Below are positions 1,625-20,979 of a stretch of 64,000 bases of DNA, one piece after another (positions within the stretch are counted from its first letter, which is position 1; every line of letters begins with the position of its first letter). The position numbers were made by a program, and so were the translations under genes. The stretch covers positions 24,056,001 to 24,120,000 of the forward strand of contig CM106586.1 of the NCBI GenBank assembly GCA_048013815.1. The letters run 5' to 3'. The stretch is from Setoptus koraiensis (taxonomy: Eukaryota; Animalia; Arthropoda). A model generated the notes under the pieces. That model was not told the origin of the DNA and did not search any database. It saw only the letters and a list, made by a program, of their open reading frames with translations.

Positions 1625-2962
1625 CTAAAGTAATAAACTTACTCTTATAGTGGTGGGTATGGCCTGCGGTCGAAGGAGAATTGTTTTGATATGGTATTCG
1701 GCTGAGCCGCTCTCTATTGTGGCTGGCACCCGTTCAAAGAATGGTCTTATTCTTTCTCCAATCATTTTTAGTCTTCTCAAGAGAAGACTTCTTTGTACTT
1801 CAGAGCCTAGTTCACATAGAGCGGATATAGATCCGTAGTAACTGGAAAGCGGTAGATTGGGATTATCTAATGCCCTGCTCAAAAGGCGAGTTATACGAGT
1901 TTGTAAACAATTTGTTGATGAATTAAAGTTTTTACATATTGTGGATAATAATTTTGAAGCAAAATCTCTTAATGCATAGTGATTATCTTGGTCAGGCCTG
2001 TTGCAAATCTGCTTCGATACTATGCAAGTGATAACTGTCGGACATAGCTCATGTAAATATTTTTCTAGATATAATGTTTGATTTTCGAGCAGTGACCGAA
2101 CCATACGCATGAGATAGATGAGCAAAGCCAAATTATTGTGTACAACATTGACTTTGACTCCCTCCGATATGAAAGTACACAACCTCGGTAACATTTGATG
2201 CAATCCTGGATCATAGCTCAACGATTGTAAAGCTTGGTGCCTTCTTGGCTCTACTGATCCTACACAGGCCTCAGTGATCTCTTTGTAATACAGTTGTTGT
2301 TCTACACTTAACTCATGAGTGGCTAATTGTTTAATTCTGACAGTCTCGATATGTTTTTTGGTTGGATTGCCAGCTGGATTTGTTCGCTGTCCATTAATTT
2401 CCATAGCTTTGGTCCTATGTAGATTAGTATTTGAACTGGCAAGAGATCTGAGAGGATCAACGCATTCTAATCGCTGTTGATCTTTGTTCAAAGGTGGTGG
2501 GTTTTCTGGTATAGCAGGCTGTACGCCATCTATGACGAGCCAATGAGATTTTATTGATACATCTTGGGGCAATTTTGGCAAGTTGACACGTGCAATAACA
2601 TCTGCTAATTCAATCTCTTTTTCTTCATGAAAAAATATTTCTCTGCCGCCTCCAGATGCAAATCTGAATGGTATGAATTCCTCACTGTGAAAACCTAAAA
2701 CAGGTTGTATGTTCTTGACTTTGAGAGCATTGTCAATATCTTTAGTTAATAGTTTCTTCCTTTTAGAATGACAACAAAATTTCTCTGCTTCTTTAACTAT
2801 GGATCTGAGTTTATTCGAAACGTCCTCGGCCATCATTTTGGCTGCGTCCTCGGTCAGAGTGCCTATCTCATCTGATTCTGCCATGAGTCTAATAGAATCA
2901 ATGCCAAAACAACGTTTCGAGTCCCACGGAGTGAGTGTCCTTTTATTGTCCTCCTTGCTCAT
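1625..2962 (-). CDS. TAF6: TFIID subunit 6 (histone fold plus HEAT domain), intronless
   Basis: Motifs KFCCHSKRKKLLTKDIDNAL, GFHSEEFIPFRFASGGGRE, HWLVIDGVQPAIPENPPP, HELSVEQQLYYKEITEACVG, DPGLHQMLPRLCTFISEGVKVNV and DNHYALRDFASKLL. Confidence 0.97.
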   Translation of the reverse strand: MSKEDNKRTLTPWDSKRCFGIDSIRLMAESDEIGTLTEDAAKMMAEDVSNKLRSIVKEAEKFCCHSKRKKLLTKDIDNALKVKNIQPVLGFHSEEFIPFRFASGGGREIFFHEEKEIELADVIARVNLPKLPQDVSIKSHWLVIDGVQPAIPENPPPLNKDQQRLECVDPLRSLASSNTNLHRTKAMEINGQRTNPAGNPTKKHIETVRIKQLATHELSVEQQLYYKEITEACVGSVEPRRHQALQSLSYDPGLHQMLPRLCTFISEGVKVNVVHNNLALLIYLMRMVRSLLENQTLYLEKYLHELCPTVITCIVSKQICNRPDQDNHYALRDFASKLLSTICKNFNSSTNCLQTRITRLLSRALDNPNLPLSSYYGSISALCELGSEVQRSLLLRRLKMIGERIRPFFERVPATIESGSAEYHIKTILLRPQAIPTTIRVSLLL

Positions 2963-3146
2963 TGTTGGTGATAGTTTTCTATCTATTTAATGATGAGATT
3001 AATAATTTATGATAAATTTTTGTTTAATCAACAACAACAGCAAGAATGAAATAAAATATTCTAACCTGGCCCTGCACTAAACGCGGTTTATTCAAATCTC
3101 AAAAAAAGTGATCATCTCTCCCGTCGCCTGCCAGTCTCTCCCTAGC
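2912..3146 (-). repeat. copy A of a ~235-bp inverted duplication (TAF6 upstream region, 5'UTR and first 17 codons)
   Basis: Reverse complement GAGAGACTGGCAGGCGACGGGAGAGATGATCACTTTTTTTGAGATTTGAATAAACCGCGTTTA...TTAAATAGATAGAAAACTAT..ATGAGCAAGGAGGACAATAAAAGG..TGGGACTCGAAACGT aligns by eye to 12589-12827. Confidence 0.9.
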
Positions 3147-3194
3147 AAGAGCTCCCTTCATTGTGAGATCTCCCTTGATAAAATAAGCCTTTTG

Positions 3195-3198
3195 AGTG
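3195..3198. repeat. left target-site duplication AGTG
   Basis: AGTG immediately precedes the TG start of the 5' LTR and recurs at 10887-10890. Confidence 0.9.
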
Positions 3199-5807
3199 TG
3201 TGATGCCGCGATGGGCATCGGTAGCACATAGCCGGTCTAGCTAACACGCCCCTCCGCACGGATATCCATGAGCGGATGCGACCGCGCCACTGCTCAGCAC
3301 AAGGAGCGCGTATGACCATAACAAACACTGATAACGCAATGCTTTGGCGCCGAGACGACGGTTGAAATTAGGAATAGAGGCTCTAAAGAGGATGACTAAC
3401 AACTTTTCAAGTTGTCGTGATAAGTTGGATCCCAAAAAAGGAGACTAGGAATCAGTACCGATTATCGACACGCAGGAGTAAGACATAACTCGAAAAACAT
3501 ATAACGATACAATACATGTACCCAATAAAATTCAGTAAATCAGCCAATTAGCATTGCTCGAAACCCAAATATTACGACACCTCCGTTACACTAACCGAGA
3601 TTTCAACATATAAAATCCTCACCAGTCCACCGACCCATAGTATATATAATTAAAAAATGACTTAATTAATAAAGCACATTTAAAAGTAGACTATAGTCAA
3701 GTAAAATTTAATTAATATACGTAATATAAATAAAATTATACTATAATAATCCATATTGAATTCAAAGTAATAAAAAGATAATATAAGAATAGTTTATTAG
3801 TAAAAACAATATAAATAATTTTATAATAAAATATACAAAAAATAAAATTAATAAAAAATAATAAAATAATTAAAATATATAAATAAAATATTAATAATAA
3901 AATAATATTAAATATATATATAATTAAAAATTAAAAAATAAAATAAAATAAAAAAACTAATAAAAATAAAATAAAAATAAAATAAAAAATAAATAAAAAA
4001 TTAAAATAAAAATAAATAAAAAAAAATTAAAAAATATCAAAAATAAAAAAATATAAATAATAAAAAAATAAATTAATATATTAAAAAATATAAAATAAAA
4101 AATAAAAATATTAATAAAATATATAAATAATATAAAAAATTAAAAATAAAATAAAAAATAATAAAAATAAAAATAAATTAAATAATATAAAATAAAAAAT
4201 AAAATAAATAAAATAAAAATAATAAAAATATAAAAATAATAAAAATTATAATAAAAATAAAATTATAATAAAAATATAAAAATAAAAATAATAATAAAAT
4301 AAAAATAAATAAAAAATAAAAATATAATATAAAAAAATAAAAAAATAAAATAATAAAAAATCTAAAAAATAAATAATATAAATATAAAAATAAAAATAAA
4401 AATAAATTATAATAAATAAATAAAAATAATAAATAATAAAAAAATAATAAAATATAATAAAATAATAAAATAATAATAAATAATAAAATATAAAAATAAA
4501 TATTAAAATAAAAAAAAATAATAAAAATATAAAATTATAAAATATATAAAAAAATAATATAATATAAATAATAAAAAAATAATATAAAATATAAAAAATA
4601 AAATATAAAATAAAAATAAAATATAAAATAAATAAAATAAATTAAATAAATTAATATAAAATAAAAATATATATATAAAAAATAAAAAATATTATAAAAT
4701 ATAAAAATAAAAAATAATAATAAAATAATAAAATAAATATTAATAAAAATAAAATAAATAAAAAAAATAAAAAAAATAAAATATATAAAAAAATAATAAA
4801 TAAAAAAAATATAATAAAAATAAATATAAATTATATAAAAAAAATAAAAAATATAAAAAATAAATTAATAAAAAAATAAAAAATAAAATAAATATAATAA
4901 AAAATAAATAAAATATAAAAAATATAATATATAAAAAAAAATAAAATAAAATAAAAAAAATAAAAATAAATAAATAATAAAATTATAAAATAAAAAATAA
5001 AAAAATATAAAAATAAAAATAATAAAAATAAATATAAAAAAAAAAAAAAAAAAATAAAAAAAAATAAATATAAAAATAATAATCGATTGCGAGGCACCCT
5101 CGCTTATTATTCCAATGCAGAAATTCTGACATAAATGCAAACTGATACACCAACCAATCAACACTAAGAACTGCCTCAAAGGAACGAACCTTTTCGGCAG
5201 ATAATTCACATATATTGTTACCTACTCAGTCACACCATTGCTGTACATATCCACCGATACAATCGGGTATTCGAGGCTAACTAAATTGTAATATCACATC
5301 CCATACCAAGAATCTTCGTTGCCTCAGATTCAACTACAAGTCAGTGACTTCCGAACTTAACTAAACAGCACCAACAGCAGCGCATTAACAGACACACTTG
5401 TCGATAGACTTCGCCTTTCCAAAGCATAGAAATAAATACAGACCTAGTTTCCATGAGATACTCATTTATTGTCATATACAACGACTCCTATATCAAAATC
5501 TGCCTCGGACCGCCAATCGCTTTCGGTGTAAAATTCCAGCCTAATTTCCTCTATAATATCACACTTATTCGATACAATTCTACCGACACATAACGCATCC
5601 CGAGGCAAGTCACTTGCTAGCGTATATACACAGGGTAAAACAAACAGTGCCTCGCGTTTGGTCACCGCTCAGCCATTTCTGATATTCACCATCTAATATT
5701 CACCGCCGTACATATCCGAACACCCGTACCGAAAGGTATTCCTAACCCAACGCATAAACGTCGCTGCCCGAGGTATTTACAATACACTCTGCTCCTTAGG
5801 CACGACA
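3199..5807 (+). repeat. 5' LTR (interrupted by an AT-rich segment at 3582-5094)
   Basis: Starts TGTGATGCCGCGATGGG and ends GCTCCTTAGGCACGACA. 3199-3581 and 5095-5807 match the 3' LTR with scattered substitutions. Confidence 0.93.
3582..5094. other. ~1.5-kb near-pure A/T low-complexity segment inside the 5' LTR, probably a long-read or assembly artefact
   Basis: Absent from the 3' LTR and flanked by CACC on both sides. G/C content fades progressively over the first ~250 bp to almost none. Confidence 0.6.
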
Positions 5808-5811
5808 TTTT

Positions 5812-5829
5812 TGGTAGCAGAGCGTGGTT
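5812..5829 (+). promoter_or_regulatory. primer-binding site complementary to the 3' end of initiator tRNA-Met
   Basis: TGGTAGCAGAGCGTGGTT begins 4 nt after the LTR end. TGGTAGCAGAG is the reverse complement of the conserved eukaryotic tRNAiMet 3' end (..CUCUGCUACCA). Confidence 0.88.
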
Positions 5830-5855
5830 CATCGAAGTCCAAGCTCAAGTTTAAC

Positions 5856-6845
5856 ATGTCAAGACCCCGCAGGGATACGATCGATGATACGGCCGATGTA
5901 AACATGAACACAACAAGTGTAAATCTCTCTGAGTCAGCGGTCAGTGACCTAGTTACCGCTTTGGGTCAGGACCCAACTTTGGTGCTTTCGAATCTTCCCC
6001 GATTCGCTGGTGGTAAAGACGAGGACGCTGAACTTTTCTTCCGTGAATACAAGAACAAACTCATAACGGCAACTGATAAGATCAAGTGCACTGGACTACG
6101 TGTCGCGCTAACAGGAGCAGCTTTAGAGTGGTTAAAGGCAAACTTGAGAGCCGATATTGAAAGTTCTAACTGGAAATCGATAAAAGTCAAATTCATTAAG
6201 CGCTTCTGTTCAGACCAATCTGAGTACAAACACCAGAATCGGCTCGATAATATGCGTTACGAACCTGGTAGCGACATAACTGTCACTTCATTCATTGAAG
6301 CTTCCATTAACACATTTCGTAAAGTTAACCCACGAGGGAATCCACCACACGCTGACTATGGGAAGCGAGTCATCCGTGCAGACTACAATCGACTATCAAT
6401 TGAAATCGAGGATTTCTCGGATACAATCACGACGATGTCAGGAATTCAGGAGGAAAACAGCCCAAAGCCTGGCCTCGCAGTGGCCGAAACCATTGGTCAA
6501 GTTTGGATGAATGATCGAACAAAGATTTATCGGGACGGTCATAAGAGGCCTCAAAGCCAAAGTCAAAGGATTAAACTCTCTCGCGATTATCGCCATGGAT
6601 CCAGGAGCCGCAGTAACCATCACGGTTCTGTTAGAAAGAGCGTAGAACGAAGGTGGTCTATCTTTGATCTATCAGCCTCGATAAAAGATAAAGAACGTGC
6701 TTCGCAATCCTTAACCAACACCGAGAAGGACCTGTTGCAAGCCAATTATGAGGAAAAATATGGCAAGGTGCCATACCCATGCAAGCTTTGCCGACAGATG
6801 CACTTCCATAGACACTGTCCATACAAAATTTCAGACTCTAAATAA
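5856..6845 (+). CDS. gag: retrotransposon Gag (capsid-like plus Cx2Cx3Hx4C knuckle)
   Basis: First ATG at 5856. LPRFAGGKDEDAELFFREY...LTGAALEWL...WKSIKVKFIKRF is a typical Ty3/Gypsy capsid region, and the C-terminus has CKLCRQMHFHRHC. Confidence 0.88.
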   Translation: MSRPRRDTIDDTADVNMNTTSVNLSESAVSDLVTALGQDPTLVLSNLPRFAGGKDEDAELFFREYKNKLITATDKIKCTGLRVALTGAALEWLKANLRADIESSNWKSIKVKFIKRFCSDQSEYKHQNRLDNMRYEPGSDITVTSFIEASINTFRKVNPRGNPPHADYGKRVIRADYNRLSIEIEDFSDTITTMSGIQEENSPKPGLAVAETIGQVWMNDRTKIYRDGHKRPQSQSQRIKLSRDYRHGSRSRSNHHGSVRKSVERRWSIFDLSASIKDKERASQSLTNTEKDLLQANYEEKYGKVPYPCKLCRQMHFHRHCPYKISDSK

Positions 6846-6953
6846 AACGGATCACTGGAGAACAGGATAACCCATTGACTGGACGTTGTCTAGCCAATTC
6901 ACCTGCAGACGTTGAACAGATTTTATTGAAGCATATTTATCGAGAAACATGAT

Positions 6954-7210
6954 GAGGGTTATTCATTTCTGAGCCAGAGCGTGGTGCGGTCAATACAAAT
7001 CCTGGCCAGATATGTATGGGCCTAGATCCCCAGAGAGCAGACGAAAATTGAATGCCTGAATTGATGTTAAAGTACAAAATTGAATTAAGAATGATAGAAT
7101 TGAGAAGCGTGAGGGTCTTTCATTTCTGAGCCAGAGCGTGGTGCGGCGGACACAAATCCTTGCAAAATTTGTAGAAACCTAGATCCCCAGAGAGCAGACG
7201 AAAATCGAAT
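6954..7210 (+). repeat. two imperfect direct repeats (period 157 bp) with two 28-nt identical blocks
   Basis: TTCATTTCTGAGCCAGAGCGTGGTGCGG and CCTAGATCCCCAGAGAGCAGACGAAAAT occur in both copies (starting 6954 and 7111), separated by a diverged spacer. Confidence 0.9.
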
Positions 7211-7259
7211 ACCTCATGCGAACCTCAAGTATGAGCATTGAACTAGCTAATGCTGATAC

Positions 7260-8113
7260 TTATTATATCTAAATATAAATACATACGCAGTAACGAGCCC
7301 AGCCTCAATAACGATTATATAAATAACGAGCCCAGTCTCATAAATGATATTAATGCGCACGAGCAAAGACTCGATAACTATAATAAGATCATCTTTTAGT
7401 AATGCATACCGGTTTATAACTGCAGTAGCTACATATTCCAGAACATCATCTGTCAATAACCACCAACTGGATAGAAACTTATGACAGGGGCCCCCTTTAC
7501 TCAAGAAAGTGGTACATACATCAGCTACTGATCACGACACTCTCATCTTACCCTTCCAATAATTCTCTTATACATTTAGATCAGTGCCGACCCATTCGGC
7601 ACAAAGAGGCAACTTACACTTCTACTGATACTAACACATCTACTAACACTTCTACTGATACTAACACATCTACTAACACTTCTACTGATACTAACACATC
7701 TACTGATACTAATAATTCACTTACTAACCATGACCACCCAGAGCAAGCCGAGTCAGGTGATACTCTTACCTTACAGAACGATAATCTATTTCTTCAACCA
7801 AATCAATACAACGCTCCGAATGCTCCTAACACCGAAGAAAGACCCCAAATTGAACGCACACAGTTAAGCAACACCACTCTTAAACACAACCAATGAAAGT
7901 CCGCCCGCAACTGACCAAGTCAATTTACGAAATGGAAGCCAAACTCAACCTGAGGAAAATTCTGTCTTGAGAGGGACCCAAGAAGCTCAATCAGTTAACA
8001 GCGAGACGCTAAACAGTAGCACCACACCGGACGCGTCCTCTACACCCTACCCCAAACCTTACACATTGAGACAGAGGGGACAAATACGACTACCGAGGCG
8101 ATTTGCCGATTAA
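7260..8113 (+). pseudogene. degenerate integrase C-terminal remnant of pol
   Basis: Frameshifted pieces read YDRGP(L/F)..., SLIHLDQCRPIR and a terminal PYTLRQRGQIRLPRRFAD-stop (TAA 8111-8113), resembling the GPY/F region and tail of Gypsy integrases. Confidence 0.55.
7617..7711. repeat. 30-bp tandem repeat, about 3 copies
   Basis: CACTTCTACTGATACTAACACATCTACTAA repeated (encodes TSTDTNTSTN in the pol-remnant frame). Confidence 0.9.
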
Positions 8114-8169
8114 CTCCATAACATATGCACACACAGTCGCTTTTATATATATATATATATATATCACAT

Positions 8170-9795
8170 TACCTCTCACCCGATACTCTAGTACTAACTT
8201 AACCAAAGCATTTCTGCCTCAAAATTGACAAACATATCGGCAGAAATTTCTGATAATTCCCTCCTAACAAACATACACTAACCATAGATAAATCACTCGA
8301 CAGAATAATAGTATCTCAGGCATGATAGATATTCTGCCCCCTATGAGCATCGATACAACGTATGCCTCAGAATTAATTACCCATCGACAAATTATTCACA
8401 TTTAACCCCCTAGTTCCTCCTTGATAACAGTTCTAAAATCTAGTCGAGAAAATACCTCGACGCAAGGCATAAATTTCGGAAAATAATTCATGAGAGACTC
8501 CATACACATATACCTATTGATAATCAAAATATCAACGCAGGATGCCTCGCAACCGGTAATGTATCGGCAAAGCAACCTGTCCTTCTGACAGAGACCTATT
8601 CAATCGATCAATTAAGGATCTGCCGATAGGAATGCTCCATCCGAGGCGCACCGGTTTCTATGGAGTATATATGACTTAAACAATCTGGATGTGACACGCC
8701 TTAAAAAGAGTTGCAGCTCGCTAAATAATTCTAACAATATTATACACGATTATTGAAGATGGCTGACTAATTTTTAACCGACAAGGAATTCGAATACGAG
8801 GCATAAATTCTCATAAACAAGCTGATGAGTTGGGACCCGAGAGCTCATGTACAAGTTGCTAATCGAACCTGCTTCGAAGTGCGCAAATCTACCGACGGAT
8901 ATACAAACAATTGGCACCATCCACTCATCCATTATTCATCCTATTAACATGTCGATAGCGATCTTATTTTCAAGGCAGAATTCACTCGTATGGCATACTC
9001 ACAAGCCACGAACAATTAAGCCACGAACATGTAAGACACAAAAAACCAAAGCCTCAAAGAGATAGGATCAAATACTTAATGGCTAGGAATGATCTTTATT
9101 AGGAGGCAAAACGCTGAAACCAAGGAAGACGTTTACAATCCCGAGCCTTTGGTTTATTTGTGGAAGCAATTTAAAAACGTGGTTGTTGATATGCGCTGGG
9201 ACCTTATTGAATCCATTGCCCGAGGCCAATGACAGGACGTAGGCACACTTGTAATCGCCACCGACTTTCTCTTTAACCGCAATTAGCCCATAATATTTAC
9301 CGTTTTTGAAGAATATATTTGCGGTGATCAAACCTGGCCCTTCCAATCGTTCAGGGAAATGATCTACCTGACAAAATACAACATTGCATGGATAATGATG
9401 CTGGCTTAGCCTTGCTCTTAATAGCCGATAGGCGCTAACCATCCTATTTCGCTCTCTCGGATTCTTATTCATGATGACCGTTGGATAATAATCGTAGTTA
9501 TTTATAAATAATTGAAGGTGCTCTTACAAGATGAAATGGACAAATGATAACGGAATTTCTCTGCATACAAATTCCGTTACTGACCACGTGCGTTACACCG
9601 AAAACAATGTTAGTGCACATGCGCACCGGAAAGGAGGGAATTTCAAATACTTGTATTGTAACCGACAACAAGACTCACTATCAAGGTTTCCTCGTTTTTC
9701 CCACAGAGGTTTTCGAGGTTTTTGCCCAGGTAGAGGAGATATTTGAACCGACTATGTGTTGCACTCTCGTAAAATCGTGCTCTAAGAGAGGGTGA
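8170..9795. pseudogene. extra ~1.6-kb region in the env position with fragmentary ORFs (decayed ORF3 and/or antisense ORF 9083-9472)
   Basis: Plus-strand fragments such as ETKEDVYNPEPLVYLWKQFKNVVVDMRWDLIES and ORF 9544-9795, plus a 129-aa minus-strand ORF in the same codon register. No env hallmarks recognised. Confidence 0.35.
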
Positions 9796-9797
9796 AA
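9784..9797 (+). promoter_or_regulatory. polypurine tract
   Basis: AAGAGAGGGTGAAA directly abuts the TG of the 3' LTR. Confidence 0.85.
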
Positions 9798-10886
9798 TGT
9801 GATGCCGCGATGGGCATCGGTAGCACATAGCCGGTCTAGCTAACACGCCCCTCCGCACGGATATCCATGAGCGGATACGACCGCGCCATTGCTCAACACA
9901 ATTAGCGCGTATGACCATAACAAACACAGATAACGCAATGCTTTGGCGCCGAGACGACGGTTGAAATTAAGAATCGAGGCTCAAAAAAGGATGACTAACA
10001 ACTTTTCAAGTTGTCGTGATAAGTTGGATCCCAAAAAGGAGACTAGGAATCAGTACCGATTATCGACACATAGGAGTAAGACATAACTCGAAAAACATAT
10101 AACGATACAATACATGTACCCAATAAAATTCAGTCAATCAGCTAATTAGCATTGCTAAAAACCAAAATACTACAACACCCTCGCTTATTATTCCAATGCA
10201 GAAATTCTGACATAAATGCAAACTGATACACCAACCAATCAACACTAAGAACTGCCTCAAAGGAACGAACCTTTTCGGCAGATAATTCACATATATTGTC
10301 ACCTACTCAGTCACACCATTGCTGTACGTATCCACCGATACAATCGGGTATTCGAGGCTAACTAAGTTGTAATATCACATCCCATACCAAGAATCTTCGT
10401 TGCCTCAGATTCAACACAAGTCGGTGACTTCCGAACTTAACAAAACAGCACCAACGGCAGCGCATTAACGAACACACTTGTCGATAGACTTCGCCTTTCC
10501 AAGGCATAGAAATAAATGCAGACCTAGTTTCCATGAGATACTCATTTATTGTCATATACAACGACTCCTATACCAAAATCTGCCTCGGACCGCCAATCTC
10601 TTTCGGTGTAAAATTCCAGCCTGATTTCCTCTATAATATCACGCTTATTCGATACAATTCTACCGACACATAACGCATCCCGAGGAAAGTCACTTGCTAG
10701 CGTATATACACAGGGTAAAACAAACAGTGCCTCGCGTTAGTTACCGCTCGGCCATTTCTGATATTCACCGTGTAATATTCACTGCCGTACATATCCGAAC
10801 ACCCGTACCGTAAGGTATTCCTAACCCGACGCATAAACGTCGCTGCCCGAGGTATTAACAATACACTCTGCTCCTTAGGCACGACA
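9798..10886 (+). repeat. 3' LTR (1089 bp)
   Basis: TGTGATGCCG...GGCACGACA, collinear with the 5' LTR once the AT-rich segment is removed. Confidence 0.95.
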
Positions 10887-10890
10887 AGTG
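10887..10890. repeat. right target-site duplication AGTG
   Basis: Matches 3195-3198. Confidence 0.9.
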
Positions 10891-11168
10891 CAAATGACGA
10901 ACTGACCGTATGCTAGAGCACACAACACACGCACATGAAGCGCCACAGCCTTCACAGTACAAATTTTTGTTCATGGTCCTCAAACCACTTTCTACCGAAC
11001 AAATTGAAGCGAAATTGCCATCAGACTACATAAAATCTAGATTTCCTGATTGTCCACAATTGTCAGTCGGTCATAACACTACTTTATTCAACCCTCATTG
11101 ATAGAATACATTTCTCAGTCAACAATTGAAACAATCTGATAATAGATATCTCTACCATTTGTCACAAC

Positions 11169-12115
11169 ATGTCAACGACAATACAACTAAACCCGAAGAC
11201 CGACACCATTGGTTCTATACAAAGACCAAAGCGTATTCAGACTAAAAGCTACAACGATCATCAATTCAACATCTTCTACCCCGGCCTCGGTTAGTATCTA
11301 GTCTACAGCATGACTGCTTGAAACTAATGCAAACTTCTTATCATTGAATTAACAAAATACAATCAAACCTCACGAAACGTTATGTACACATAAATTCTTC
11401 TACAGGTGAAGAGGGCAGAGAAAGATTATTAAGGGAATCTTCAACGGTCTATGTTGGAAACTTGTCTTTTTACACAAGCGAATCTCAGTTATATGAACTT
11501 TTTTCTAGATGTGGTGATATTAAACGCGTCATCATGGGACTGGACAAATTCAAAAAGACGCCATGTGGGTTTTGTTTTGTTGAGTACGAGGAAAGAGAAT
11601 CAGCACTAAGCTGTCTGAATACTTTAAACTATACTCATCTGGATGGTAGGATTATTAAAATTGACATCGACACAGGCTTTAGGGAAGGACGTCAATTTGG
11701 TAGGGGAGAGGGCGGAGGTCAACTTGCCGATGAGAAACGAAATAAAAATAACGACGGAGGTCCTTCTCCAGGAAATAGAGGAAGACGCCATTTCATGTAT
11801 TCTCTGCAGATAATCATGTGTCTGACGATAGTGATTTATTGTTGCTCAATAGTTTCTTATTCCGCTCCAACACCCCAGCAACCACAACATATTCAGCGAA
11901 TGGCCAACACTTATCGCCCGCGACGAATTCCACATACGAGTACTGAAGGTATAGCATTTGAGCAATATTTCGCCAGGCTCTTGGTAGATTTCATGAAAAT
12001 ATCTAAACCTACTCTAATGCAAGCCTTCATGCGGGCAACTATGGATGATCCAAAACTCAGAGAAACCGCCATCAATATTTTCTTCAACTCCCCCTCTGAC
12101 CCTCATGACCCCTGA
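11169..12115 (+). CDS. NCBP2: nuclear cap-binding protein subunit 2 (CBP20), predicted exons 11169-11289 and 11406-12115, with an unusual C-terminal extension
   Basis: [49 protein letters not shown]...[22 protein letters not shown] phase-matched GTTAGT...CTACAG intron joins an upstream ATG exon (exon 1 is less certain). Confidence 0.9.
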
Positions 12116-12588
12116 GAGACATGGGCCAGTGAGCCCTGCAAAACGACTTACAAGGATATCCCAAACCATCCGCAAAATATATCACCTTCGGTGGTGAGAA
12201 ATGATCTCTTACAACAAAATATTGACTTCAAACCTATGTGTTATTTCATTTTCGATTGATGGGGAATGTAAATAAAATCCAACTAACCAGTCATTATTAG
12301 AGTAACCTGTTGTCTAAGTGGTACCTTATGTATTTAACTTACTCGTTTACTAATTGAGGTGATGAGATTTTCTCATAGGGAACATTCACCACTATCGCGT
12401 CCAACTTGTGACCATTCATGATTGACATTTGATGTGTAACGAGGAACCTCGTCTCCTCATTTGAAAGATACTGCCAACCCGTTATTCTGGCGTTGGCATA
12501 TGTAACTTTGTTGCCGATCTATTCTGGTTCAACTAGGTATGGATATAAATTAAAACATTCTCTTTGGGTCACCAGTGTCAAGAATTTC

Positions 12589-12827
12589 TCTCCCTGGGAG
12601 AAATTGGCGGGCGACTCGAGAAATAATCACTTTTCTGAGATTTGAATAGAGCGCGTTTACACAACAGATAGCCGGTTTACAATATTTTTTTTTTTCGTTT
12701 CATTCCATCGTTGTTGGAAAGAACATTTATTAATTAGTAATATTACTATTAAATAGACAGAAAACTATTATTAGCCATGAGTAAAGACGACAAAAAAAGG
12801 ATAGCCACCCTATGGGACTCAAAACGT
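12589..12827 (+). repeat. copy B of the inverted duplication (p47 upstream region, 5'UTR and first 17 codons)
   Basis: GAGAAATTGGCGGGCGACTCGAGAAATAATCACTTTTCTGAGATTTGAATAGAGCGCGTTTA...TTAAATAGACAGAAAACTAT..ATGAGTAAAGACGACAAAAAAAGG..TGGGACTCAAAACGT. Confidence 0.9.
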
Positions 12828-13634
12828 GACGATAACGACCAAGAGGGTCAAGCCTTTTATGCAGGCGGATCAGAACAAAGTGGACAGCAGATTCTAGGTC
12901 CAAGAGATCACAATAATCCAGGCCCAATGATAGAGAATCTTTTCACTCAGGCAAGACAGCAAGCTGTTGCAGGGACTAGCAGCGGTAGTAGTTCTGCTAA
13001 TAGTGGCTCGTCAGCATTACCTACTCTGGCAATTAGATTCTGGCGTAATGGTTTCACAGTGGGTGAAGGAGATCTAAGACAATATGGCACGCCAGAGAAT
13101 GTACAATTTCTTGAATATTTGAAAAGGGGTGAAACACCACCAGAGCTCATAAACATTGTTAGAAATGGTTTAGTAGAGGTCAAGTTAGAGAATCATGGCA
13201 ACGATGAATATAAGCCTGTAAAAAAAATCAAACCTTTCTCCGGTGAAGGACATCGCCTGGGGGCGCCGACACCAGACACTATCACTAATGACAGTAGTAC
13301 CAGTCAGCAGCAGCAGGAACAACTACAACAGCAACAACAACCACAACAACAACAATCTCAGGAGAAAAAAGTAAACGAGATTTGTACCAACATCAATGAG
13401 CCTTCCACAAATATACAGGTGCGCTTGACCGACAACTCACGTCTTGTAATTAGAGTCAATTTGACACAAACGATTTCCGATATTGTAAGCTATGTTAGAA
13501 GTGCTAGGCCTCAATATGCTAGTACAAATTTTGTGTTAGCTACTACGTATCCAGCACGAGAATTGTGTGATCTGCAGCAAACAATTGTTGATGCCAAGTT
13601 ACAAAATGCAGCACTGTTACAAAAGATCAAATAA
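12777..13634 (+). CDS. NSFL1C: p97/VCP cofactor of the p47/p37 family (SEP, SHP and UBX; no UBA seen)
   Basis: EGQAFYAGGSEQSGQQILGP, SEP domain FWRNGFTV..GDLR.Y..PEN..FL, SHP box FSGEGHRLG, and UBX TNIQVRLTD...FVLATTYP.EL...AKLQNA. Confidence 0.92.
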   Translation: MSKDDKKRIATLWDSKRDDNDQEGQAFYAGGSEQSGQQILGPRDHNNPGPMIENLFTQARQQAVAGTSSGSSSANSGSSALPTLAIRFWRNGFTVGEGDLRQYGTPENVQFLEYLKRGETPPELINIVRNGLVEVKLENHGNDEYKPVKKIKPFSGEGHRLGAPTPDTITNDSSTSQQQQEQLQQQQQPQQQQSQEKKVNEICTNINEPSTNIQVRLTDNSRLVIRVNLTQTISDIVSYVRSARPQYASTNFVLATTYPARELCDLQQTIVDAKLQNAALLQKIK

Positions 13635-19551: not shown

Positions 19552-20180
19552 CTAATCTAGAGAATAATGTGATTGTGTTTACAATAGTTATAATTAGCCT
19601 GTGAAATAAATTGCTATACAGTAGTGTTGCACTATGGTAGGCTTCATGATTTATGACACCTCAATGGTCTTATAAACACTTTCTGGTAATGATAAGTGTT
19701 GCGAAAGTTACCATTCGACTAGCCTCCTTATGTAACCGATTGCATTTTGTGTTTAGTAAGGACACTCGATATTCAACAATGATCCCATTTCCCTCGCACA
19801 TACCAGAGCAATTAAACACGTTCTTGAAATTCTAGCCGTCGTTGCATCAGTTCCTTCATCTGCGCATGGCTTCGCATTTATCTGATGATATTTGTTTTGA
19901 ACCGTAGCGTTTCTAAGTGTATCGCACACCATCAATTTCTTGACCAATGTCTACAATAAATTTATATTGCCATCTTGCACTGTGCGGATTTTCCAATAAA
20001 TCTGCCGAGGGCTCGGGAAAAATCCGCCAGAGGCGCTATCACCGTCGAAAAAATGTACATGCGAGGGCAGACTGTTTCAATAAATATTTTATTTTTTCGA
20101 TTGCTTTAGCGACTTCTAAACGCGCATTTCGCTGAAGTTCGTAATGCAGATTGCAGATAACTACTCCTCGTGATAGATTG

Positions 20181-20680
20181 NNNNNNNNNNNNNNNNNNNN
20201 NNNNNNNNNNNNNNNNNNNNNNNNNNNNNNNNNNNNNNNNNNNNNNNNNNNNNNNNNNNNNNNNNNNNNNNNNNNNNNNNNNNNNNNNNNNNNNNNNNNN
20301 NNNNNNNNNNNNNNNNNNNNNNNNNNNNNNNNNNNNNNNNNNNNNNNNNNNNNNNNNNNNNNNNNNNNNNNNNNNNNNNNNNNNNNNNNNNNNNNNNNNN
20401 NNNNNNNNNNNNNNNNNNNNNNNNNNNNNNNNNNNNNNNNNNNNNNNNNNNNNNNNNNNNNNNNNNNNNNNNNNNNNNNNNNNNNNNNNNNNNNNNNNNN
20501 NNNNNNNNNNNNNNNNNNNNNNNNNNNNNNNNNNNNNNNNNNNNNNNNNNNNNNNNNNNNNNNNNNNNNNNNNNNNNNNNNNNNNNNNNNNNNNNNNNNN
20601 NNNNNNNNNNNNNNNNNNNNNNNNNNNNNNNNNNNNNNNNNNNNNNNNNNNNNNNNNNNNNNNNNNNNNNNNNNNNNNNN
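20181..20680. other. assembly gap (500 N)
   Basis: Run of N. Confidence 1.
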
Positions 20681-20979
20681 TTAATTGATTATTACAATGA
20701 GCTTAACTATGAAATTCTATTAGTACAATAACAATTCATTGGCCAATACAAGATCGATATGCCAAGCAGCAAAATAAATAAAATTATGACTCTCAACGAC
20801 AAGAGCAAGAGCCTCTCCGTACGTCTGCTTTATATCGTACGTATTCAATAAAGACGACGACAGTAAAAGCAACATCGATATCTTGTTTTTGGCAAACAAC
20901 CACCCACTCATAATAATAATTACAATATTGCTTACAATCTAAAAAATAAGCCCAAAGAGGCCAAAAAGTAAATCATATC

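Follow-up and report, generated by a model that had tools for sequence, protein, structure and literature searches.

The TAF6 and p47 genes of Setoptus koraiensis lie on opposite strands of a 64,000-nucleotide stretch of DNA, hereafter called the window, and encode proteins that open with similar peptides, 12 of the 17 residues being identical. This raises the question of how two such different genes came to share a start, and which of them supplied it. The genes and the DNA that they share are:

1625..2962, minus strand: TAF6 gene, a single 445-aa ORF whose residues 1-17 are p47-derived.
12777..13634, plus strand: p47 (NSFL1C-type) gene, a single 285-aa ORF that encodes SEP and UBX domains but no UBA.
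2912..3151, minus strand: derived (recipient) copy, comprising TAF6 codons 1-17 (2962-2912) and about 181-189 bp upstream; missing from the TAF6 of the closest relative, locus L011.
12588..12827, plus strand: source (donor) copy, comprising p47 proximal upstream DNA and codons 1-17 (12777-12827); its peptide is conserved in relatives.

In each gene the repeat begins about 181-189 bp ahead of the ATG and ends with codon 17; its limits are 2912-3142/3151 (minus strand) and 12588/12596-12827 (plus strand). An alignment of 2912-3151 with 12588-12827 gave 74% identity (171 matching and 60 mismatched positions, plus 9 gap columns), with 73% in the upstream DNA and 78% in the 17 codons, and in TAF6 and p47 alike the similarity ends abruptly past codon 17. 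An earlier sequence-only reading had placed the repeat within a few bases of these limits, with an upstream reach of about 180 bp; the start peptides that it quoted read exactly as given, and its three DNA blocks were all found. The similarity also withstood controls: the local alignment score of the copies was 95, compared with 11.4 ± 1.5 (maximum 18) in 1000 dinucleotide-preserving shuffles and a maximum of 20 in 1000 real 321-nt pieces cut from the window. BLAST of the repeat against all 48.7 Mb of the assembly gave an E-value of 1.6e-25, and this search yielded no third copy. A search for a small RNA gene within the shared block gave no Rfam match above noise and no tRNA. These data confirm a real repeat that is unique to two loci of the assembly.

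We then considered the identity of p47 and the origin of its start. The protein carries a Pfam SEP domain (E = 1.6e-21) followed by a C-terminal UBX domain (E = 4e-14), no other SEP-UBX gene is present in the assembly, and a profile of p47 and its relatives matches PDB p47 chains at 1e-94. Between the two domains, the SHP box (F.G.G..LG) has all of its invariant residues (F154, G156, G158, L161 and G162). The UBA domain is absent from the window p47 and 23 close relatives and present in more distant p47 proteins; human p37 is likewise drawn without it. The UBA-less relatives (P0001-P0023) have the N-terminus MS(K/R)DNKKIATLWDNK, and the core of the peptide is found in 25 of 97 p47 hits, compared with none of 120 TAF6 hits. 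The p47 start peptide aligns to human p47 at residues 69-82, with the RVTSFRDL segment, and to yeast Shp1 at residues 122-138, with the D1-binding motif. The earlier equation of this peptide with the native RVTSFRDL segment is borne out by these two alignments and by its conservation in about two dozen relatives. The comparison identifies p47 as the donor, with a start peptide that is native to it.

The TAF6 protein contains the TAF histone fold (PF02969, E = 1.2e-18, residues 20-81) and the C-terminal HEAT-repeat domain TAF6_C (PF07571, E = 5.6e-69, residues 215-399) and shares 61-65% identity with named TAF6 proteins of mites, the figure for Tetranychus being 65%. It is the one full TAF6 in the assembly, the sole other match being a histone-fold paralogue at 32% identity. 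Leaders of TAF6 relatives vary from 3 to 122 residues, are unrelated in sequence and, in all outgroup TAF6 N-termini compared, lack the p47-like peptide. Two relatives, P0098 and P0099 (94% and 90% identical; on these identities, P0098 groups with the window TAF6 and P0099 falls outside the pair), read ...GTHFGI(D/E)SIRL, and His-Phe-Gly is common in other mite TAF6 proteins where the window TAF6 has Arg-Cys-Phe-Gly. At L011, the locus of the closest TAF6 relative and our representative of the sister lineage, the protein is 94-96% identical to the window TAF6 and the DNA is 92% identical from codon 19 on; upstream of codon 19, the score of the same comparison is 11, no better than that of shuffles, where the control reaches 247. 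This 5' region of the sister has no counterpart in the window or the genome, except for one repeat end, and remnants of the ancestral TAF6 5' end are absent from the window, the far side of the LTR element described below included. The sister contig stops 317 bp upstream of TAF6, and the flanking neighbours there are unassembled. The point at which the two kinds of sequence meet is sharp:

2909..2914, minus strand: junction; codon 17 (CGT) is the final p47-like codon, codon 18 is TGT (Cys, where relatives have His), and similarity to the sister begins at codon 19.

The junction is in frame and the chimeric reading frame is open, with the break at most 3 nt from the repeat end; no microhomology is clearly readable at the junction after about 30% divergence. 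The loss of DNA similarity to L011 at the repeat end and the count of 0 in 120 TAF6 relatives identify TAF6 as the recipient, with a start that is derived, and thereby uphold the claim that p47 was the donor and that TAF6 was given a borrowed N-terminus.

The DNA between the two copies is occupied as follows:

3143..3198, strand not assigned: spacer of 56 bp from the derived copy to the LTR element; matches nothing tested; 3195-3198 is the target-site duplication.
3199..10886, plus strand: LTR retrotransposon with TG...CA ends and the target-site duplication AGTG, inserted after the duplication.
3199-5807, plus strand: 5' LTR, broken by an AT-rich block at about 3582-5094.
5811-6845: gag-like ORF inside the LTR element, with a weak gag match.
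9798-10886, plus strand: 3' LTR, which pairs with the 5' LTR.
11169..11815, plus strand: CBP20 (nuclear cap-binding protein subunit 2); exon 1 11169-11290, intron 11291-11405, exon 2 from 11406, 3' end approximate.

No pol ORF was seen in the LTR element (3199-10886). Without this element, which is real, the copies would be 1,761 bp apart, in line with the earlier estimate of about 1.8 kb, which had overlooked CBP20 in between; before its arrival, TAF6 and CBP20 stood head to head with about 515 bp between them. CBP20 has an RRM_1 match, and its exon 2, used alone as query with the exons unjoined, is 60-69% identical to named NCBP2 proteins. The CBP20 locus of the sister was not found in the exon 2 search (best match 69%), nor was its p47 locus in the p47 search, where the best match was only 59% identical.

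The age of the event can be gauged from divergence. The copies differ by a K2P distance of 0.33, and the window and sister TAF6 genes by a dS of 0.40 and a four-fold-site distance of 0.34, which places the duplication close to the split from the sister lineage or shortly after it. In the non-coding DNA 3' of TAF6, window and sister share 84% identity, above the 74% of the copies. If that region were neutral, the duplication would appear to predate the split, contradicting its absence in the sister; we assume that the region is constrained, because two convergent 3' ends fall there. The LTR element is younger than the duplication, since its 5' and 3' LTRs are 95-96% identical, and they are too alike to predate the split. 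An LTR insertion shared with the sister was also considered and rejected: bases 90-141 of L011 match repeat ends elsewhere in the Setoptus genome and do not significantly match the window LTR.

The explanation that best accounts for the whole, and that we hold with considerable confidence, is that about 235 bp of the p47 5' end was copied in inverted orientation onto TAF6, replacing its native start. On this account, the piece copied to TAF6, then some 1.8 kb off, would have held p47 codons 1-17 together with the untranslated leader and proximal upstream DNA of that gene; it would have replaced the native upstream DNA of TAF6 and the first 24 or so codons and joined in frame one to two residues ahead of the histone-fold domain. 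Behind the observed duplication, with its direction, breakpoint, relative age and motif decay in TAF6, the molecular mechanism of copying may have been a local DNA-level repair or template-switch accident in the window's lineage, the product of which then became fixed; the LTR retrotransposon would have inserted between the copies much later. TAF6 would now start at a p47-derived ATG with a p47-derived leader and most likely fires from p47-derived promoter DNA. The new start was presumably tolerated because the native leader is variable and dispensable and because TAF6 and p47 are both housekeeping genes.

The case for a promoter follows from the geometry of the locus. From the TAF6 ATG to the LTR element there are 237 bp, of which 181-189 are p47-derived, and the element is oriented away from TAF6. 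It is reasonable to infer that the borrowed DNA acts as the TAF6 promoter, with a predicted transcription start and the first ATG as putative initiation codon. One candidate element is present in both copies:

12641..12655, plus strand: TTTGAAT with a GC-rich element, at -135 of p47, positioned like TTTGAAT..GCCCGC in five relatives.
3082..3096, minus strand: copy of this element, at -133 of TAF6, within the 13-nt longest identical run.

In the five relatives, the TTTGAAT..GC-rich element is found between -135 and -166 of p47; upstream of TAF6 in L011 and L015 it is missing. In an unbiased scan with an HMM from the five relatives' sites, the window's element sites were not among the top hits, and TTTGAAT occurs 30 times in 128 kb, or about 0.01 times per 40-nt positional window, in what is a post hoc, position-restricted 7-mer argument. 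As a p47-typical promoter element it is suggestive only. The upstream 181 bp may be assigned to p47 by this weak motif match and by contiguity with the 17 codons. The sequence-only reading had gone further and taken conserved blocks among divergent spacers as a sign of function, a view that the alignment does not sustain: the longest run identical between the copies is 13 nt, with 12.1 expected, matching runs cluster along the repeat no more than expected by chance (p = 0.20, permutation of match/mismatch states), and the upstream divergence of 27% is near the neutral ceiling set by the split.

A larger, complex rearrangement might have produced the same outcome. In this scenario, p47 came as a small unit to lie beside CBP20 and TAF6, and the replication-based repair that brought it there also templated the inverted 5' copy at another breakpoint, within TAF6. 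In five of seven p47 loci fetched from relatives, a convergent PIG-L gene comes next after p47, and in two of them an Arf-like GTPase precedes it; in the window's genome, PIG-L sits on the other contig, and the Arf-like orthologue lies at a distance of 10.6 Mb. These displacements speak for the larger event, as does the palindromic sequence at the p47-side end of the repeat, whereas synteny is generally fluid in this clade and the sister contig ends too close to TAF6, at the 317 bp mentioned above, to reveal its neighbours. We regard this scenario, which refines rather than opposes copying of the p47 5' end onto TAF6, as possible on a tentative footing.

The near-neutral divergence and unclustered matches of the upstream DNA would also suit transcriptionally silent baggage, in which only the ATG and 17 codons matter and TAF6 is driven by antisense LTR activity or, before the LTR element arrived, by the side shared with CBP20. 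The former head-to-head arrangement favors this idea. However, the LTR element has separated TAF6 from the CBP20 side and yet the sole TAF6 gene is intact, and the element is directed away from TAF6, so we consider silent baggage unlikely. More doubtful still is an RNA-mediated capture, in which part of the p47 mRNA, from its 5' end, was reverse-transcribed and entered TAF6 at a break, without any promoter transfer. The segment terminates in coding region and could fit entirely in a long 5' leader, the last 105 or so nt before the start codon lack an upstream ATG in both copies, and retroelements are active in this genome. Against this, retro-copies normally retain 3' rather than 5' ends, and the copies are near each other and inverted, as is typical of local DNA events. 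Capture from RNA would moreover require transcription of the p47-typical element at -135 and would leave TAF6 with only 56 bp of other DNA ahead of the later LTR insertion and, prior to that insertion, with the CBP20 side.

The reverse direction, from TAF6 to p47, or an ancient shared 5' module has nothing in its favor besides the similarity itself and is refuted by the N-termini of p47 and TAF6 relatives together with the L011 DNA, as the peptide starts p47 in about two dozen relatives, is an internal conserved motif in UBA-bearing p47 and Shp1, and occurs in no TAF6 relative, the two at 90-94% identity included. A dispersed repeat, a mobile promoter cassette or an assembly artefact, which the LTR element adjoining the TAF6-side copy might bring to mind, is just as implausible: the whole-assembly search gave two copies only, without Rfam or tRNA matches, the copy lies outside the LTR element and its target-site duplication, and a 26% difference with the frame kept is beyond any assembly error.

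In textbook chimeric genes, a new gene is added and the parents are unaltered. Tumour promoter-swap fusions such as TMPRSS2-ERG resemble the proposed copying of the p47 5' end onto TAF6 in that the recipient retains a functional body and acquires, at its own locus, the promoter and first exon of a different gene; such fusions are somatic and pathological, with a strong change in expression, whereas the TAF6 case is germline, fixed and concerns two housekeeping genes. Chimeric genes of Drosophila yakuba arise from partial or tandem duplication with exon shuffling (Rogers et al. 2017, PMC5460883; Stewart and Rogers 2019, PMC6776367). There too, a DNA-level duplication has fused the regulatory DNA and first coding portion of one gene, in frame, with the body of a second, but the chimeras are extra genes with intact parents, while here the sole TAF6 copy has lost its native 5' end, and the copy is inverted, very small (235 bp) and old (26% diverged). 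In a Schistosoma japonicum gene family with a common core promoter and signal-sequence exon (Mbanefo et al. 2012, PMC3434034), a promoter and first-exon unit has likewise been duplicated as DNA to head different gene bodies, the promoter role being presumptive in our case; that module is dispersed genome-wide at many loci of lineage-specific secreted proteins, in contrast to the one extra copy on a conserved essential gene described here. The TAF6 start is a chimeric gene by partial duplication, which is a known kind and brings no new principle; what sets it apart is that the alteration struck the sole TAF6 gene in situ. A core essential general transcription factor with no second gene copy lost its start codon, leader and probable promoter to those of a neighbour, and the lineage survived. 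With mapped breakpoints, known direction and a relative date, the case shows that a change of 5' end can be tolerable to an essential housekeeping gene.

The transferred peptide has had different fates in the two proteins. The D1-binding (D1B) motif of yeast Shp1 comprises residues 125-138, and it has been termed weakly conserved in p47, with a call for validation (Cooney et al. 2024, PMC11362554). Over its residues 8-17, the transferred peptide aligns to this motif and to human p47 RVTSFRDL; of the 14 motif positions only 10 were transferred, and the TAF6 copy has since altered three core residues, one of them to proline. Of the five residue differences between the copies, four are departures of TAF6 from the p47 consensus (D to E, I to T, A to L and L to P) and none is attributable to change in p47. 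The same 235 bp has been a natural experiment under two constraints, the motif remaining intact in p47 and decaying in TAF6, where the p47-derived peptide is a decayed passenger. It is very improbable that the borrowed segment puts TAF6 under the cis-regulatory input of p47 and that a remnant of the Cdc48/p97 D1-binding motif, kept at the TAF6 N-terminus, lets the p97 segregase engage TFIID directly. Two smaller observations concern the p47 locus itself: the gene has left its ancestral neighbours in this genome, a move that the sequence-only reading overlooked, and the upstream end of its repeat copy is the centre of a short imperfect palindrome.

TAF6 (ORF 1625-2962, minus strand, starting MSKEDNKRTLTPWDSKR) and p47 (ORF 12777-13634, plus strand, starting MSKDDKKRIATLWDSKR) share a 5' segment that, in the DNA alignment, takes in the first 17 codons in full and roughly 181-189 bp ahead of each ATG, essentially where the sequence-only reading had placed it. 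The global alignment of the arms has 171 matching columns, 60 mismatched and 9 gapped, corresponding to 74% identity (upstream 73%, 17 codons 78%) and a K2P distance of 0.33. Their local score of 95 stands against 11.4 ± 1.5 for 1000 dinucleotide-preserving shuffles, so that the similarity passed the comparison with shuffled controls, and against a best score of 20 among 1000 genuine segments drawn from this window. A search of the whole 48.7 Mb assembly recovered the second copy at E = 1.6e-25 and no third one. The locus is organized as follows:

2912-3142/3151, minus strand, and 12588/12596-12827, plus strand: repeat arms (DNA alignment)
3199-10886: LTR retrotransposon with TG..CA ends and a gag-like ORF, separating the two copies
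3195-3198 and 10887-10890: 4-bp target-site duplication AGTG, flanking the LTR retrotransposon
ATG at 11169, intron 11291-11405: CBP20, two exons, between the copies

This is the only full TAF6 gene in the assembly; according to Pfam it encodes a TAF histone-fold domain from residue 20 plus TAF6_C, and its top named matches are acariform mites. p47, the only SEP-UBX gene in the assembly, carries SEP and UBX domains without UBA (Pfam). Between the copies, the LTR element had been recognized from the sequence alone while CBP20 had been overlooked; subtracting the element leaves the copies 1,761 bp apart, in line with the predicted 1.8 kb, and places TAF6 and CBP20 head-to-head with their ATGs about 515 bp apart. 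The CBP20 search used exon 2 alone. The exon-2 frame stays open for about 100 codons beyond the usual CBP20 end (11816-12115), a stretch with no Pfam match that may reflect an overlooked intron, an extended C-terminus or a frame left open by chance. No pol was visible in the retrotransposon, whose 5' LTR contains an extremely AT-rich, internally repetitive 1.5 kb block (3582-5094; GC about 0.20 across 4001-6000) that has no counterpart in the 3' LTR or in two further LTR copies of the genome.

The proposal that p47 was the donor is supported by its relatives, to which the start peptide is native. The closest p47 proteins (P0001-P0023, 43-59% identical) are all UBA-less and start MS(K/R)DNKKIATLWDNK, and where p47 proteins do carry a UBA, the IAT(L/F) segment immediately precedes the invariant QAFYAGGS..SGQQ block. 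In a profile of p47 relatives the segment aligns with human p47 starting at residue 69 (DNRVTSFRDL...) and with yeast Shp1 starting at residue 122; the D1-binding motif comprises Shp1 residues 125-138 (Cooney et al. 2024, PMC11362554). Among the p47 matches, 25 of 97 contain the peptide core T[LP]WD[SNKG]K, against none of 120 TAF6 matches. The p47 locus of the sister species was searched for and not found, p47 relatives being at most 59% identical. As a separate observation, neither the UBA domain nor the N-terminal SHP box is present in p47 here or in about two dozen relatives (loci: window 12777-13634, L012, L013, L016-L020), and these UBA-less proteins begin right at the segment aligning with the Shp1 D1-binding motif; a minimal SEP-UBX cofactor is thus the only p47-type gene across a whole clade.

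TAF6 was confirmed as the recipient, since the peptide is also absent from its two closest proteins, P0098 (full-length identity 94%) and P0099 (90%). These read ...NSYGTHFGIDSIRL and ...NNNGTHFGIESIRL, respectively; the junction residues are His-Phe-Gly in many more distant mites too and Arg-Cys-Phe-Gly in the window. Pairwise identities place P0099 outside the pair formed by P0098 and the window, so the TAF6 start in the window is derived. The sister contig L011, which encodes P0098, shows 92% DNA identity to the window beginning at codon 19 (TTTTGG...) and does not align upstream of it. A sister piece consisting of 317 bp of upstream DNA and the first 24 TAF6 codons scored at shuffle level against the TAF6 5' region (11), the p47 5' region (11) and the DNA beyond the LTR (10), while the next 300 nt of TAF6 coding sequence scored 247. 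Because non-coding DNA 3' of TAF6 still aligns with L011 at 84% identity, the loss of similarity upstream reflects replacement of the TAF6 5' region rather than mere divergence. The junction is in frame, sits in the 3 nt between codons 17 and 19, and falls one to two residues ahead of the Pfam TAF domain match. L011 itself ends in repeat-like sequence (90-141, about 180 bp upstream of the TAF6 ATG) that is 85-90% identical to repeat ends at two sites in the present genome; a different repeat may also lie just upstream of TAF6 in the closest relative.

TAF6 differs between the window and L011 by a dS of 0.40 and a dN of 0.019 (424 codons), with a distance of 0.34 at four-fold sites, and the two copies have diverged by K = 0.32-0.33. 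If the segment is nearly neutral, the duplication occurred around the time the L011 lineage split off or shortly afterwards, consistent with its absence in L011; this also implies that the segment as a whole evolved near the neutral rate. At odds with this dating, the 3' intergenic region has only 16% mismatches between window and sister, less than between the copies, which we assume to reflect constraint on two convergent 3' ends. The LTRs are 95-96% identical, indicating that the retrotransposon arrived long after the duplication.

We propose that neighbouring-site break repair or replication template switching made the TAF6-side copy, because there are only two copies, which are close, inverted, small and without prior homology, and because the event was a replacement and not an insertion. 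In five of seven p47 loci fetched, p47 is followed by a convergent PIG-L gene, and in two of those an Arf-like GTPase lies ahead of it. In this genome, PIG-L is on another contig than p47 and the Arf-like orthologue is 10.6 Mb off:

C1:5644642-5645400 and C2:13497163-13497684 (contigs of the same assembly): ancestral p47 neighbours PIG-L and Arf-like GTPase, scattered

p47 therefore relocated alone, away from its ancestral neighbours, and the rearrangement that placed it here may have produced the TAF6 fusion as a by-product.

On geometric grounds, we infer that p47-derived DNA would act as the TAF6 promoter: the TAF6 ATG lies just 237 bp from the LTR, 181-189 bp of this interval being p47-derived, the element is oriented away from TAF6, and the sole TAF6 gene has survived intact after the insertion severed it from the CBP20 side. 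A hint that a p47 promoter feature was carried to TAF6 comes from a TTTGAAT(1-3 nt)GCC(C)GC element at -135 to -166 of p47 in five relatives (variant in one). TTTGAAT followed by a GC-rich stretch is present in both window copies, at -135 of p47 and -133 of TAF6, the TAF6 site falling within the longest identical run of the arms, and is absent from the TAF6 upstream regions of L011 and of another relative, L015. The strict form of the element has six matches in 99 kb on both strands, five of them upstream of p47, with the serious caveat that it was defined post hoc, after the data had been seen; an HMM from the relatives' sites did not rank those of the window. Judging by sequence alone, an Inr-like TCATTC about 105 nt ahead of each ATG is a possible start site. 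The suggestion that conserved blocks mark function in both copies did not hold, as match runs are no more clustered than in permuted alignments (p = 0.20).

The p47-derived peptide most likely has no specific role in TAF6. The copies differ at five residues; at four of these the TAF6 copy has departed from the p47 consensus, in one case to proline, and none is a change in the p47 copy. The motif is retained in p47 and decaying in TAF6. In relatives, TAF6 leaders are 3 to 122 residues long and show no sequence relationship.

The case belongs to the same class as chimeric genes formed by partial duplication or exon shuffling (PMC5460883, PMC6776367), and groups with duplicated promoter-plus-first-exon modules (PMC3434034); its oddity is the in-place exchange of the 5' end of an essential general transcription factor gene that has no other copy. 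We regard it as well supported and moderately interesting, with no new principle. Elsewhere in the window, a run of N, either withheld bases or a gap in the assembly, spans 20151-20688, and a 412-aa lysine-rich ORF (80-1318) with a weak DUF4779 match is convergent with TAF6; in L011 and L015, a gene at the same place and in the same orientation follows TAF6.
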